Assembly: GCF_046119375.1 (NCBI RefSeq)
Contig: NW_027367499.1
Coordinates: 1-57,584, forward strand
Length of the DNA stretch: 57,584 nt
Direction of reading: 5' to 3'
Origin: Phyllobates terribilis
Lineage: Eukaryota
Made by a program: the position numbers and the translations under genes
The notes under the pieces: generated by a model
The model's input: only the letters and a program-made list of their open reading frames with translations
Database searches by the model: none
What the model was told of the DNA's origin: nothing
Shown here: positions 31,390-41,626 of the stretch, piece after piece
Layout: each line of letters starts with the position of its first letter
Position numbering within the stretch: the first letter of the stretch is position 1

Positions 31390-31568
31390 CGTTATGATGG
31401 GCACCGCACATGGCGCGATGATGGAAGACCAAATGGCCGTGACGGCAGAGGCGAACATTGGCGTGACGCTGGACAAAGCTGAAGACGTCACGTCGTAAAT
31501 TTTTAACAGGTGTCGTGACGACGGTGGCGAGATACAACGTGACGGCAAAGTTTATAATAGGCGTGACG
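31390..31568. repeat. Left-terminal array of CGTGACG motifs at ~24-bp period
   Basis: Motif starts at 31390*, 31414*, 31438, 31462, 31486 (reverse), 31514, 31538 and 31562 (* = degenerate). Spacers are unrelated to each other. Confidence 0.85.
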
Positions 31569-32118
31569 GTATGGTCTTTTATTGATAGGAGATGTTTTTG
31601 ATGTTCGTAAGTATTTTTATTAGTTGTAAATGGTTATTTAAGCCTTTTTATGCTATTTTTGACAAGAAAATCACATTAAATGATAGTGTTAGGCTGGGTG
31701 GGTCTGTAAGGGTGTTCGGAAGGATGAAAACGTACTTGTATTGAATGAAAGGGATGTATTAGGTGGTTTTAACAATGTTGTGTGATATGTAATGACCTAT
31801 ATTGAGATCTTGTGACATTAAGTGACACTTGAATTCATCCCCGTACTAATGTCTATTTTGTAACAGCTAGTGTCCTCATGTTTCCAATATTTTGTAGTTT
31901 AATGGTAAGAGAGTATGAAGTTGGAAGCATTGCTACTAGTTGTGCATGAATAAAATAGCACAACAAGCCACAACTTTATTTAATGTGTACAAGAAAATAG
32001 TCCAACAATGCATAAATTCAATGTCAACAGCCCATGAAGACACTGCATAGTGAACATGAAAATCACCCCTTAAATAGGCCATGTATGTGAAATTTGTGTT
32101 ATAGCCCAATGTCTTGGT

Positions 32119-32200
32119 CGTCACGTCCGGAGTGACGCAGAACGTGACGCCCTAACCCACCCAAGTCGTCACGCCAGGGATGGTTTCCATCGTCACGCGC
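32119..32200. repeat. Internal CGTGACG/CGTCACG array upstream of the transposase TATA box
   Basis: Motifs at 32119, 32143, 32167 and 32191 (exact 24-bp steps). The last extends to CACGCGC (32194-32200). TATA-like ctatttaaa at 32347. Confidence 0.85.
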
Positions 32201-32418
32201 CGCAAGCTAGACTGAAAAGCCAGAAGTAGGCTGTCGTATCAAGCCCATGCCTCTGTAATTATGTCTCCAACTCAAGGGTGCAGCGACATGACCGACACCT
32301 GCAACATTTGAACCATTTTCATCCACAAAAATAGCTTCATGTTCTTCTATTTAAACCCCTACACCTCACCATCTTCATTCACCAAATCACTTACAACATT
32401 TCTCTCCATTCTAACAAA

Positions 32419-37549: not shown

Positions 37550-40500
37550 TCAAGGTCTCTCATAAAAAGACATCTCGCAAAGACTGTTGTTTATGGTGTG
37601 CCACATGTCCCATGGAGGATATTCTTCTTCCTCCTTGAAAGGCATGAGGTACCCCTTTATGCGCTCCATGCACTGAACGATTAACGCAAACATTAAAGGA
37701 AATCAATGAATTCAACTCACTACTAATTGAAATGTAGGGATGAAATGGGTTACCTCTTCGATGTCATCTACCATAGGCGGTATAATCTTCGGATGTGTGC
37801 GAGGTAGATACCACTCCATGTAATCATGGGTTACCTCGTAACCGTACGAAGTCTGCGCCCCTAGAGCATGGAGTGATATCTTGTGGAAATTTTGTGCATC
37901 CCACACCCAACTCGTCGTTGTATACTCGACTCTATAGCTACCGATCGACCGTGGCCGGATCGCTCTCGATGGTGCGATCAATGGCGCCGGAATGCATTGG
38001 ACTATACCGAACTGCCTCAAGACTCGGTCGGGCATATACGGTTCGGTGATGTCATGCGAGAAGCCCAGAACACCATGAAACAGAGATGGTGCGAGCTCCG
38101 GAGCATCAAAGTCCAAGACTCCGTATGGCAGCCAGTCAACCTGAATTTGGAATTAAGTGACAGGGTAAGCCTACGATAGAAAGTAGACATTTATTTACAC
38201 CTACAATTCACTCTGCACAATACATACCTCGGCGGCTTGCATGGCATCCAGCTCCGCACGGTAGTTTCTCCCGTGCCCGGACATGGCATCGGGGGCCCAT
38301 TTCATGGCCAGAGGCCGCCCACCTTCCCACCCACTTAGGTGTGGCCTGAAAGCTGGGAAGTAGTTGTATATCCAGCTCTGCATTTTATGTCACAAAAATC
38401 ATCGTATCGACGTTGTAGATATAAACATATTTTCATTGACATACAATTACTTACCATCACCAGCGTATAGCACGCCGAGATCTTCTTACAGCCAGCCCTG
38501 GAGGCCTTTCCAAGCTCTCGGTAAGTCGAAGCTAGCAGGCCGGCGCCCCATGCCCACTCACCAACCTCGTCAAGGTCCCGGACGTACTCTATGTGCGAGA
38601 GGGGGATCTTATTCTGAGATCTATCCGGGAACAGAGCACTACCCAACAGGTGGAGTAGAAATCCCGAGCGTGTAACATGCGGGGTCAGAGACATGCACTG
38701 GTGGCTGGTGCATGCGTTCCTAAGCTTATCATGGGCGACACCATTGTCGCTCACATCCAAGCCGAAAAATGCCTTGGCCTCGGCCACCTTCGTGGTGAGG
38801 TCGGTTTTCTTCCCCACAAGCCGTTGCATCTCGGAGGCACCCATCCCCTTGCCAGTTATCGGTAGCTTCATTTGCTCGTTTACATCGTGCAGGGTGATTG
38901 TCATCTCACCAAAAGGTAGGTGAAATGAGCTGGTCTCGGGCTGCCACCTCTCCACAAACGCCATGAACAGTTCCCTGTCGACGTGCTCGTACATTAGGTC
39001 CGGGATGTGCTCGAGCTGGGCATCGACGGCAGCGAACAACATGGGGCTCCCCCTCGTTGCTTTCCAAGCTCCCAACATCTTATGACGGAACTGGAAATTG
39101 CAAGTACGACCCTACATATCGAGTTTAAAACTTATGTGAGAACATTGTACGGGAACTTAAGTACATTTCAATGAACATGTAGCTTACCTTTCCCTGCCAA
39201 ATGTCGGACGCAACGTGGGCAGGGAACCCGCGAAGCAGCTCAGGGTTCTCCGGGCCACCATTAACCCCTACGGTCAGAAAGGGGTCAATGGTGATGGCCC
39301 TGTTCGGTCTACTACGTGGCCTCTGGATGTCCTCCTCCATTGCCACACCCTCATCCCGTGGGGCATCCCACCGTCCTTGCCCCCTCCACGCGTCCTACAA
39401 AACATATGTAATATTGAAACATTCCTGATCTGGTTTATGAAACTTAACTTAACGTTAACAATGTTACACTATATTAAACATACCTCCAAACCAGCTTCTT
39501 CTTCCGCATCATGAGGCTCTTCCTCCTCATCCATACCCTGATCATGCCCGAACGCGGACCAATCTCCTTGATGGCGATCGTAGTCACCACCGTAGTATGC
39601 TTGCGAGCCACCACCGTATTCGTAGTGTGACCCGGCTGACCCACCACCGTAGTGGAACTCCGATCCCCCGCCCGCGTAATGCCCGGACCCGTCGCCCTGG
39701 TGGTAATCAGACCCACCACCCATCTGTTGGGCACCGTAGTACCCCAACATCAACGGGTGGGAAGACGATGCGTCTCCCATGAACTCGTCCGCCCCGCCAC
39801 CGGAGATGGAATGGTGTGACCCGGATGCCTCCGGGTACATCGGATACGGGTACTGGGGCTCCTCGGACTCGCATTGTCGGCCATCCCCGGAGACAGAATG
39901 TCTCGCAGGCATGTAGTGCGCCGAGGCGGATGCCCTTTCGGCACCCCGCTTCTTCTTCCGGGCCACCCTAGCGCCCAGTTCTGCTTCTGTTCTGGCCGCT
40001 TCCTCCGCAGCCAGTCGCGCGGCCTCTTCGGCATCCCTCACGGCATCCCTTTTCTGGTGCCGTGCTGATCGGGATCCTATGCCACCAACCTTCTTCGAAA
40101 TCCTCTTTAGACGGTCCTGCATACACAAAATACCAAATCCACTTCACATACTCACTACTAAGATAATTTTTATACGCAATGGTATTAAGCAACATATATA
40201 GCTAAAATCACCAAAAAAACTCAATATTCCTAACACAAATTAATTTAATTCAATTTTTTTACGTAAATACCAACAATACTATAATAATACACATGTAAAT
40301 AATATACACGTAAATAATATATTTCAATTTTTTTCACCTAAATACCAACAAATAATTCAAATAATTCTAATTGTTTCACCAAAAAATTAGATTTATTTAC
40401 GTACATTCCTAAAAATCATAAAAAATTCTAAAAAATACACGTAAATTCCTAAAAAATTCCTAATAAATCTAAAAAATCATAAAAATCCCAATTGTTATAA

Positions 40501-41272
40501 TTCTTAGTAAATTATCTATAAAATCCACGTATTTCCTATAAAATTATATTTATTTATGTAAATTCATAAAATAATTCCTAAAAATCCTAATTGTTCTAAT
40601 TCTTTGAAAATATCTATAAAATCCACTTAAATTCCTAAAAATACAGAATTATTTACTAAATTCGTAAATAAAACCTAGAAAATTCATTAAATCTAATTAA
40701 AACCTAAAAAAATATTATTTACGCATATAAAAAATTCCTCTAAATACCTAAAAAATCCATTAAAAATCATAAAAAATCCATTAAATATTATTTACGCATA
40801 TACAAAATTCCCTTTATTTACGGATATAAAATACAGTACTTTAACACAAGAAAATTAATTAAATTTATTTTCCCCCCTAAATACCTAAAAAATCCATTAA
40901 AAATCATAAAAAATTATAAAAAATTTCCTCTACAACCAAATACCCATAAAATCAATAATCCAACTAAATAGTCAATATATATTAACATTTTAACCATAAA
41001 TTTTTATTAATTCACATTATTTTAACTAATTAACAAGATTAAATACTCAAACTCCCAATAATTCAACCTAAAAACCAATCTATCCAAATATCATCCAAAT
41101 CAACTCAAATCTTCCATAAAATTCAAGATTCAAACAATATTATGTCTAAATATTACATTAATTCAACAAATTAACATATATAACTACTAAATCTTCCAAA
41201 AACAACTATAAAAACTTATAGATCTACAAATAAAACAACTCAATCAAGCTAGAAAATTGAAGAACTTACCAT
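37550..41272 (-). CDS. Plant Mobile Domain (PMD, MAIN/MAIL-like) protein, 730 aa, intact; exons 41272-41270, 40116-39484, 39394-39188, 39111-38455, 38377-38228, 38140-37721, 37672-37550
   Basis: PMD hallmarks GGPENPELL, FVERWQPETSSFHLPFGEMTITLHDV, WAWGAGLLASTYREL, SWIYNYFP, VDWLPY and EPYMPDRVLRQFG. Six GT-AG introns, all phase 0, join the exons without a stop. TATA-like tataaaa on the minus strand at ~41455. The ATG-only first exon and the last exon are inferred. Confidence 0.85.
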
Positions 41273-41475
41273 AATAACTTTGAATTGGGTGTTGTTGAAG
41301 GAAGAACAACGAAACAAGTGAACTAGGAGGACCGGATTCAATCAAAACAACCAAAAGGAGAGTTGAAGGAGCTCGAATGAAGGAGAGGGAGTAATGGAGT
41401 GAAATGGAGGCGGCAGAGAAGGTAAGTGGGAGGGTTTAGGTCGATTCTGGCTTTTATAGCCAAAATCGGGTCTGG

Positions 41476-41626
41476 CGTGACGCCAGAAACCGTTTGGCGT
41501 CGCGCCTTAAACCCTTTCTGGCGTTGCGCTGGGTATTGTTTCCAGCGTGACGCCGAATTCCCCCCCCCCCCCGCGACGATGTAAATTAAACTCCCCGTGA
41601 CGCTATATTTGTACCCCCGCGTGACG
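41476..41626. repeat. Right-terminal CGTGACG motif array at ~24-bp period
   Basis: Motif starts at 41476, 41498*, 41522*, 41546, 41572*, 41596 and 41620 (* = degenerate). Lies immediately upstream of the PMD TATA box. Confidence 0.85.

Follow-up and report, generated by a model that had tools for sequence, protein, structure and literature searches.

The stretch of DNA analysed here, 57,584 nt long (positions 1 to 57,584 of contig NW_027367499.1, forward strand, in the Phyllobates terribilis assembly GCF_046119375.1), will be called the window; it is free of N stretches and carries a ~10-kb plant Mutator-like transposon (Mutator-like element, MULE) in which the near-palindrome CGTSACG (S, G or C) recurs with a period of 24 bp near either terminus and also ahead of the transposase gene. 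The anatomy of this lattice, its conservation among relatives and the turnover of the DNA between its sites were observed directly. On sequence grounds, the lattice probably offers cognate sites to a sequence-specific DNA-binding protein that the Mutator-like family itself encodes.

Anatomy of the 24-bp lattice in the window element

Exact copies of CGTGACG or CGTCACG number 14 in the 57.6 kb, and every one of them lies inside the element, between positions 31438 and 41626. Dinucleotide shuffling (n = 100) yielded a mean of 1.27 CGTSACG and a maximum of 4, with 0/100 shuffles reaching 14. Motif discovery and periodicity tests, which an earlier note on this DNA had suggested for the ends of the family, were run on the window element and put CGTCACG at a period of 24 on top: it ranked first in an unbiased scan of all 7-mers, with 8 equal intervals, while 200 local Markov simulations of the element produced at most 2. 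A search of the literature for the lattice motif itself returned nothing relevant.

When sites with one or two mismatches are counted, the lattice comprises 19 positions in three arrays, and 13 of the 16 within-array intervals measure exactly 24 bp. The left lattice (31390-31568) holds eight sites, at 31390, 31414, 31438, 31462, 31486, 31514, 31538 and 31562, spaced by 24, 24, 24, 24, 28, 24 and 24 bp; six of them are exact CGTSACG, those at 31390 and 31414 being degenerate in the window copy. An internal, promoter-proximal array (32119-32197) consists of four exact sites at 32119, 32143, 32167 and 32191, each 24 bp from the next, plus a one-mismatch site at 32131 that falls on the half-step. 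The right lattice (41476-41626) has seven sites, four exact, two with one mismatch and one with two, at 41476, 41498, 41522, 41546, 41572, 41596 and 41620, with intervals of 22, 24, 24, 26, 24 and 24 bp. The earlier note had listed the same spacings for all three arrays.

The two outer arrays are bounded by conserved terminal sequences, located at 31338-31389 on the forward strand and, as their inverted counterpart, at 41627-41680 on the reverse strand. Both carry a CTAT..GTCG..TTTT.CTAACCCTCG anchor, and the first lattice site begins 10 nt past CTAACCCTCG. With the CTAT..GTCG anchor as origin (31347 on the forward strand, 41669 on the reverse strand), both ends have their first three sites beginning at 43, 67 and 91 bp; these distances, already given in the earlier note, came out unchanged upon remeasurement. 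Both terminal inverted repeats (TIRs) thus contain arrays of a short repeat, and the register of one mirrors that of the other. A telomere-like CTAACCCT is also present inside both terminal anchors, at 31370-31379 and at 41645-41636 (reverse strand). No clean target-site duplication was found, and the outer boundary of the element is approximate.

In-register alignment of the sites confined the information to the motif, with 1.4-1.9 bits at six of its seven positions and ~0.5 bits at the central S; spacer columns stood at ~0 bits, and Tandem Repeats Finder (TRF) did not call the arrays. In-register spacer identity was 0.31, against 0.25 for shifted controls. CGT-S-ACG is a palindrome except for its central base. 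Of the earlier claim that the motif occurs in either orientation with two CpGs in each copy, the two CpGs per site hold, whereas orientation loses its meaning in a palindrome of which only the central G or C differs. The observed/expected ratio of CpG was 1.7 and 1.36 in arrays, compared to 0.65 in flanks. Coding sequence was tried as an explanation of the arrays and rejected, since the strand of the overlapping open reading frames (ORFs) in the window is opposite to that in its relative L001.

Conservation and turnover of the lattice in other copies and lineages

Contigs from four public runs, compared with the window at 80% likeness or more, showed that the window element belongs to a high-copy family. 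Most other copies read C at 31393 and 31395, which restores CGTCACG at the 31390 site, and T and C at 31416 and 31419, which restores CGTGACG at the 31414 site. Among the best-supported variants, none fell in an intact motif and six fell in spacers. Read depth amounted to 10-30 thousand over 31586-31860, directly inside the left lattice, and to ~0.5-1 thousand over the arrays. Since depth over the arrays is thus 20-40 times lower than over the adjacent block, the arrays are the most variable part of the family.

More distant relatives were found in plant metagenome contigs (L001, L003, L005 and L131, the first two from ENA), of which L005 alone displays both ends. The transposase exon of L001 and L003 is 81% identical to that of the window at the protein level, and DNA identity is ~82% over 3.3 kb. 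L001 has the same terminal anchor as the window, its first site again lies 10 nt past the anchor, and its six sites are spaced by 24, 24, 27, 24 and 24 bp, the odd interval of 27 being placed as the 28 is in the window. Three further sites form a promoter array at the homologous position. In contrast to this conservation, positionally matched spacers of the window and L001 are only 12-29% identical, whereas the rest of their non-coding DNA shows segment identities of 71-88% (medians of 0.74-0.88), with 0 of 61 17-nt windows at or below 30%. Because insertions and deletions are common in the non-coding DNA nearby (25 of 345 columns are gaps), passive retention of a 24-bp period over such divergence appears unlikely.

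L005 is considerably more diverged, with ~55% identity in the plant mobile domain (PMD) protein described below and 53-71% in the transposase exons, and nonetheless carries 35 sites in seven arrays, 24 of 26 intervals being exactly 24 bp. Its arrays occupy both TIRs, the region upstream of the transposase, the gap that separates two coding blocks of the transposase (possibly an intron), and a position right after the PMD start codon, in the putative first intron of that gene. The TIRs of L005 are recognizable at the sequence level, being 86% identical to each other, and are built of the lattice. The earlier suggestion that the long TIRs of the window element lost sequence identity while keeping motif register is in keeping with this arrangement. 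One array of L005 (10197-10293) is made of four identical 24-bp units; we interpret it as a very young array, and as direct evidence that arrays can expand by tandem duplication.

The fourth lineage, L131, has an ORF for a DNA-binding domain 43% identical to that of L001 and five sites exactly 24 bp apart, with W at the centre (CGTWACG). Across the four lineages, CGT-N-ACG at 24 bp is kept, with 47 of 53 intervals exactly 24, while the flanks of the site are symmetric and lineage-specific: G.CGTSACG.C in the window, TTCGTSACGAA in L001 and L003, GAAACGTSACGTTTC in L005 and CACACGTWACGTGTG in L131. Three relatives of the PMD gene at 33% identity (L125, L126 and L128) lacked the lattice altogether.

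Each site of the window contains one TGACG, the arrays stand upstream of TATA boxes, and the sites at 32119, 32131 and 32143 follow one another at 12 bp, which is also the spacing of the TGACG pairs in as-1. The arrays might then be host bZIP enhancers (TGA-factor, as-1/ocs-type TGACG) recruited by the transposon. Comparison of sites and lineages makes this improbable: the 5' CG that completes the palindrome is invariant in 28/28 sites; TGACG covers only five of the seven invariant positions; CGTWACG of L131 contains no TGACG; the ACGT core is not conserved across lineages; 12-bp stepping occurs at one place only in a window lattice whose period is 24 bp; and neither the strict period nor the register from the termini would be explained.

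Scanning metagenomes for runs of three sites spaced by 24 bp returned at least 119 matches. No MULE or PMD homology was found among the matches listed, 67 of the 119 listed loci had a GC content near 70%, and in the ten arrays inspected, units of 12 or 24 bp were simply repeated in tandem, the spacers being nearly identical. Such genuine simple repeats differ in their spacers from the lattice, and this bears on whether the latter could be a functionless, decayed 24-bp tandem repeat. That arrays do arise by tandem duplication, as in L005, and that a trace of in-register spacer similarity persists (0.31 versus 0.25) would both be expected of a decayed repeat. The pattern of conservation is nevertheless the opposite of what decay should leave behind, as it is restricted to the CpG-bearing motif, which ought to be the first to decay; moreover, the motif is retained in four lineages and in register at both ends, and degenerate sites are restored in family reads. 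With TRF silent and the information content limited to the motif, the ordinary decayed repeat without excess motif conservation that the earlier note had named as the finding that would count against its proposal was not what we found, and we regard this explanation as very improbable. Rather, conservation of the half-sites, the period and the distance to the terminus, together with replacement of everything in between, argues for selection on a binding lattice as opposed to a neutral repeat. The proposal of the earlier note that the motifs form a protein-binding scaffold is thus supported insofar as the lattice behaves like one under selection, its motif, period and register having been kept in four diverged lineages in which the spacers were replaced.

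Genes and other parts of the element

Homology searches with the genes of the window were made exon by exon. A TATA-like box at 32346-32357 and the transposase ATG at 32419 (feature 32346-32421, forward strand), both read from the sequence, are conserved in L001, and the internal array lies ~150 bp upstream of them. The transposase exons (33180-36057, forward strand) comprise a FAR1-like WRKY-GCM1 DNA-binding exon, a MULE domain at 34044-34607 and an exon with SWIM and OTU-like sequences at 34708-36057. Assignment to the Mutator transposases relies on the Pfam MULE family (PF10551, 6e-15); FAR1 (PF03101) scored 31.3 bits in L005, above the cut-off, and was weak in L001. Relative to L001 and L003, the DNA-binding exon of the window carries an 8-bp deletion near 33604 (33600-33610) that causes a frameshift. 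A search of the PDB with the DNA-binding domain of the transposase yielded a weak match to Aft2 only.

The conserved, high-copy non-coding block at 31586-31860 (forward strand) is 88% identical to L001. It contains a conserved GTAAGT at 31609 and shows sharp breakpoints at ~31586 and 31858-31862 in many contigs. The block may be a leader intron, or else the core of abundant non-autonomous derivatives.

Downstream of the transposase, the segment that holds the Myb/SANT-like ORFs (36170-37535, forward strand) has no blastn counterpart in L001, where ~190 bp occupy its place, and looks like a lineage-specific insertion or capture. A 173-aa Myb/SANT-like protein from this segment had been put forward in the earlier note as a possible reader of the lattice. 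Apart from the location of its gene in the same element, nothing speaks for such a role: the ORFs have no Pfam match, and tblastn found no homologue in any of L001, L003 and L005, although the lattice is present in all three. We therefore give this candidate hardly any credence. The other protein-based clue of the earlier note, the FHY3/FAR1 target CACGCGC, fared no better as a key to the lattice, with one copy in the window (32194-32200) and CACGCAC in L001. A minority of other genomic copies (~10% of read depth) have A at 32199.

The remaining gene of the element encodes a PMD protein of the MAIN-LIKE type, the exons of which extend over 37712-40128 on the reverse strand and include a conserved upstream ORF (39469-40128). 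The PMD ORF matched PF10536 at 5e-32 (111.8 bits); a second match, to PF09331 (DUF1985), remained under its cut-off (18.1 versus 35.1 bits). The best named homologues are MAIN-LIKE 1 proteins (36-40% identity), the clade being assigned by homology, and a PDB search with the PMD ORF gave no match. The promoter and leader of the gene (41270-41459, reverse strand), likewise read from the sequence, show TATAAAA at 41459-41451, a telobox CTAAACCCT at 41439-41431, the ATG at 41272-41270 and then GTAAGT. The right lattice sits just upstream of the gene and ends 17 bp before TATAAAA. This layout of lattice, TATA box and leader is common to the window and the left end of L005. The telobox is of the exact telomere type. 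The first coding exon apparently consists of the ATG alone, with the donor GTAAGT/GTTAGT directly after it (41272-41264, reverse strand, in the window; 3129-3137 in L005). Within the first intron of the PMD gene, the region 40283-40924 is filled with AT-rich nested tandem repeats with periods of ~10, 21, 41, 73 and 99 bp.

Elsewhere in the window, a pair of direct repeats (22910-23040 and 26601-26731) 3.69 kb apart and ~90% identical, each with four TAGTCAAAGATATC at 20/30/20 spacing, probably represents the long terminal repeats or the ends of another small element.

A candidate binding-site lattice and its possible reader

How such a lattice might be used is suggested by the form of its sites and by where they lie. 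The palindromic site and the symmetric changes in its flanks suggest a symmetric binder: a dimer or a protein with paired domains could contact CGT-N-ACG together with the flanking bases particular to each lineage. At the ends of the element, six to eight sites 24 bp apart and at a fixed distance inside the terminus would load an oligomer that marks the ends and pairs them for transposition. At the promoters, the right lattice, upstream of the TATA box of PMD, and the internal array, upstream of the TATA-like box of the transposase, could allow the same binder to activate the genes of the element or to block their silencing, and the arrays in the putative introns of the transposase and PMD genes of L005 may be placed with the promoter arrays as elements of gene control. 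Arrays would grow by tandem duplication of 24-bp units, after which spacers would turn over freely or under diversifying pressure, with selection keeping the motif and, apparently, the spacing.

The binder would most likely be the N-terminal, FAR1-type WRKY-GCM1 domain of the transposase, to which we assign somewhat less than an even chance. It is the simplest candidate because of precedents among MULEs and because of the fixed register of the sites from the termini. Muta1, a MULE of Aedes, has subterminal repeats onto which oligomeric transposase is loaded and which increase both cleavage and excision (PMC5499845). Like the present element, it has TIRs in which a short repeat occurs many times after a terminal motif, with differences between the ends located in the linkers (PMC5499845), as well as a transposase of the Mutator family whose N-terminus holds a DNA-binding domain (FAR1 in L005, frameshifted in the window copy). 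Unlike our family, Muta1 has a 12-bp repeat with linkers of 3-4 bp, hence a period of 15-16 bp, and its two TIRs are almost identical; here, a 7-bp palindromic core alternates with free 17-bp spacers at a period of 24 bp, additional arrays accompany promoters and, in L005, also separate coding blocks, and an accessory PMD gene is present. A second precedent is provided by the AtMu1c transposase and by TnpA of Spm, which bind clustered terminal motifs, leading to hypomethylation and transcription (bioRxiv 10.64898/2026.08.24.746577). Clustering of motifs at transposon termini is common to those elements and ours, and binding by the element's own protein would extend the analogy; the elements and motifs themselves differ, and those motifs are not known to follow a strict period. 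Similar phased arrays may occur in other MULEs, with AGTGCACT every 23 bp, CATGAACC every 22 bp and arrays of TGATGACA.

A less favoured but still serious candidate, absent from the earlier note, is the PMD protein, which could bind the lattice alone or with the transposase. In its more specific form, this alternative, which we hold possible but place well behind the broader idea of a binder encoded by the family, has the lattice acting as the cis-element of the element's PMD-C protein, a VANC- or MAIL-like anti-silencing factor, while the transposase reads only the terminal ~50 bp. MAIN, MAIL1 and MAIL2 are found at particular promoter motifs and are similar in fold to the DUF1985 domain of VANC (bioRxiv 10.1101/2024.09.27.615353), to which the PMD ORF of the window has its weak match. 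Arrays are also found in promoters and in the intron-like gaps between coding blocks of L005, as are VANC targets, and a telobox follows the TATA box, as in target promoters of MAIL. The 'DOWN' motif of Arabidopsis MAIN/MAIL1 is CGTGCCGTTT, invariant at C.TG.CGTTT (PMC7156037 S7 Table). The L005 site CGTGACGTTT fits every invariant DOWN position and agrees with the motif at 9 of 10 positions; the sites of L001 (CGTGACGAA) and of the window (CGTGACG with G or C as the next base) misfit in the flank. The TTT flank being specific to L005, agreement with DOWN across the family is limited to C1, T3, C6 and G7, which is near chance, and the resemblance may serve as a lead only. The literature consulted does not establish that PMD-C contacts DNA directly, sites held at a constant distance from the termini would more commonly be expected for a transposase, and three PMD relatives at 33% identity lack the lattice.

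Comparison with the systems on which the PMD-C alternative is modelled is likewise two-sided. The targets of VANC are fast-evolving arrays of motifs (PMC5735166), and escape from RNA-directed DNA methylation (RdDM) has been proposed as the driver of their turnover. As in VANDAL21, a MULE accessory protein is paired here with dense arrays of short motifs in upstream and putatively intronic positions (PMC5735166, PMC10398659), and tandem-repeat arrays differ sharply between related copies. On the other hand, VANDALs have no TIRs, and the VANC motif is non-palindromic and present in a single orientation. Here, the TIRs consist of arrays, and the termini carry conserved inverted sequences, so that the element is not a non-TIR MULE; the accessory gene is a PMD gene with a weak DUF1985 signal, and the period is fixed across lineages. 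The conserved stretches of the lattice, at most 7-15 bp long, fall below the 21-24 nt of small interfering RNAs, which would fit the idea of turnover as an escape from RdDM, a point we offer as speculation. The host modules formed by PMD-C and M1M-M2M have in common with the element a PMD-C-type protein (PF10536), promoter-proximal and partly palindromic CG motifs and a telobox; they differ in being host genes with one or few motifs per promoter and no arrays, and the likeness of motifs (9/10 for DOWN in L005) is weak in the window and L001 lineages. A bolder and, in our estimation, unlikely scenario would make CGT-N-ACG the native target of the transposon PMD-C, with arrays at the TIR promoters recruiting the PMD protein to keep the genes of the element unsilenced; the anti-Polycomb modules of the host (MAIN/MAIL1/MAIL2-M1M/M2M) would be domesticated, single-site descendants, and the 24-bp spacing would reflect cooperative assembly of PMD protein or transposase.

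Several points weigh against a lattice of binding sites read by a protein of the family. Binding, the identity of the binder and its dual role at ends and promoters are all inferred from sequence. The constant period could be inherited from duplication of the unit and not selected; the lattice accommodates intervals of 22 and of 25-28 bp, and a step of 24 bp does not correspond to an integral number of helical turns. The relatives are known from metagenome contigs only, with the right end comparable only in L005. The window copy itself is dead, with no intact transposase and five degenerate lattice sites, and no RNA runs containing the stretch were found.

By analogy, a cognate binding-site lattice would belong to a type of system that is already known, in which a transposon protein is combined with clustered cognate motifs, and which would here be found in a PMD-carrying MULE family. 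What is notable about the present case is that a strict 24-bp period is kept across deep divergence while the site is retuned lineage by lineage. Several plant DNA transposons rely on motif arrays bound by their own protein both to recognise their ends and to avoid being silenced. This family amounts to a natural experiment on such arrays, in which half-sites, the 24-bp period and the distance to the terminus survived, the centre base and flanks changed, and the spacers were replaced. The differences between lineages provide ready specificity-swap and spacing variants for binding studies, and the combination of arrays with a PMD-C gene offers a direct test bed for asking whether the PMD proteins of transposons counteract silencing in a sequence-directed manner, as the MAIL proteins of the host do.

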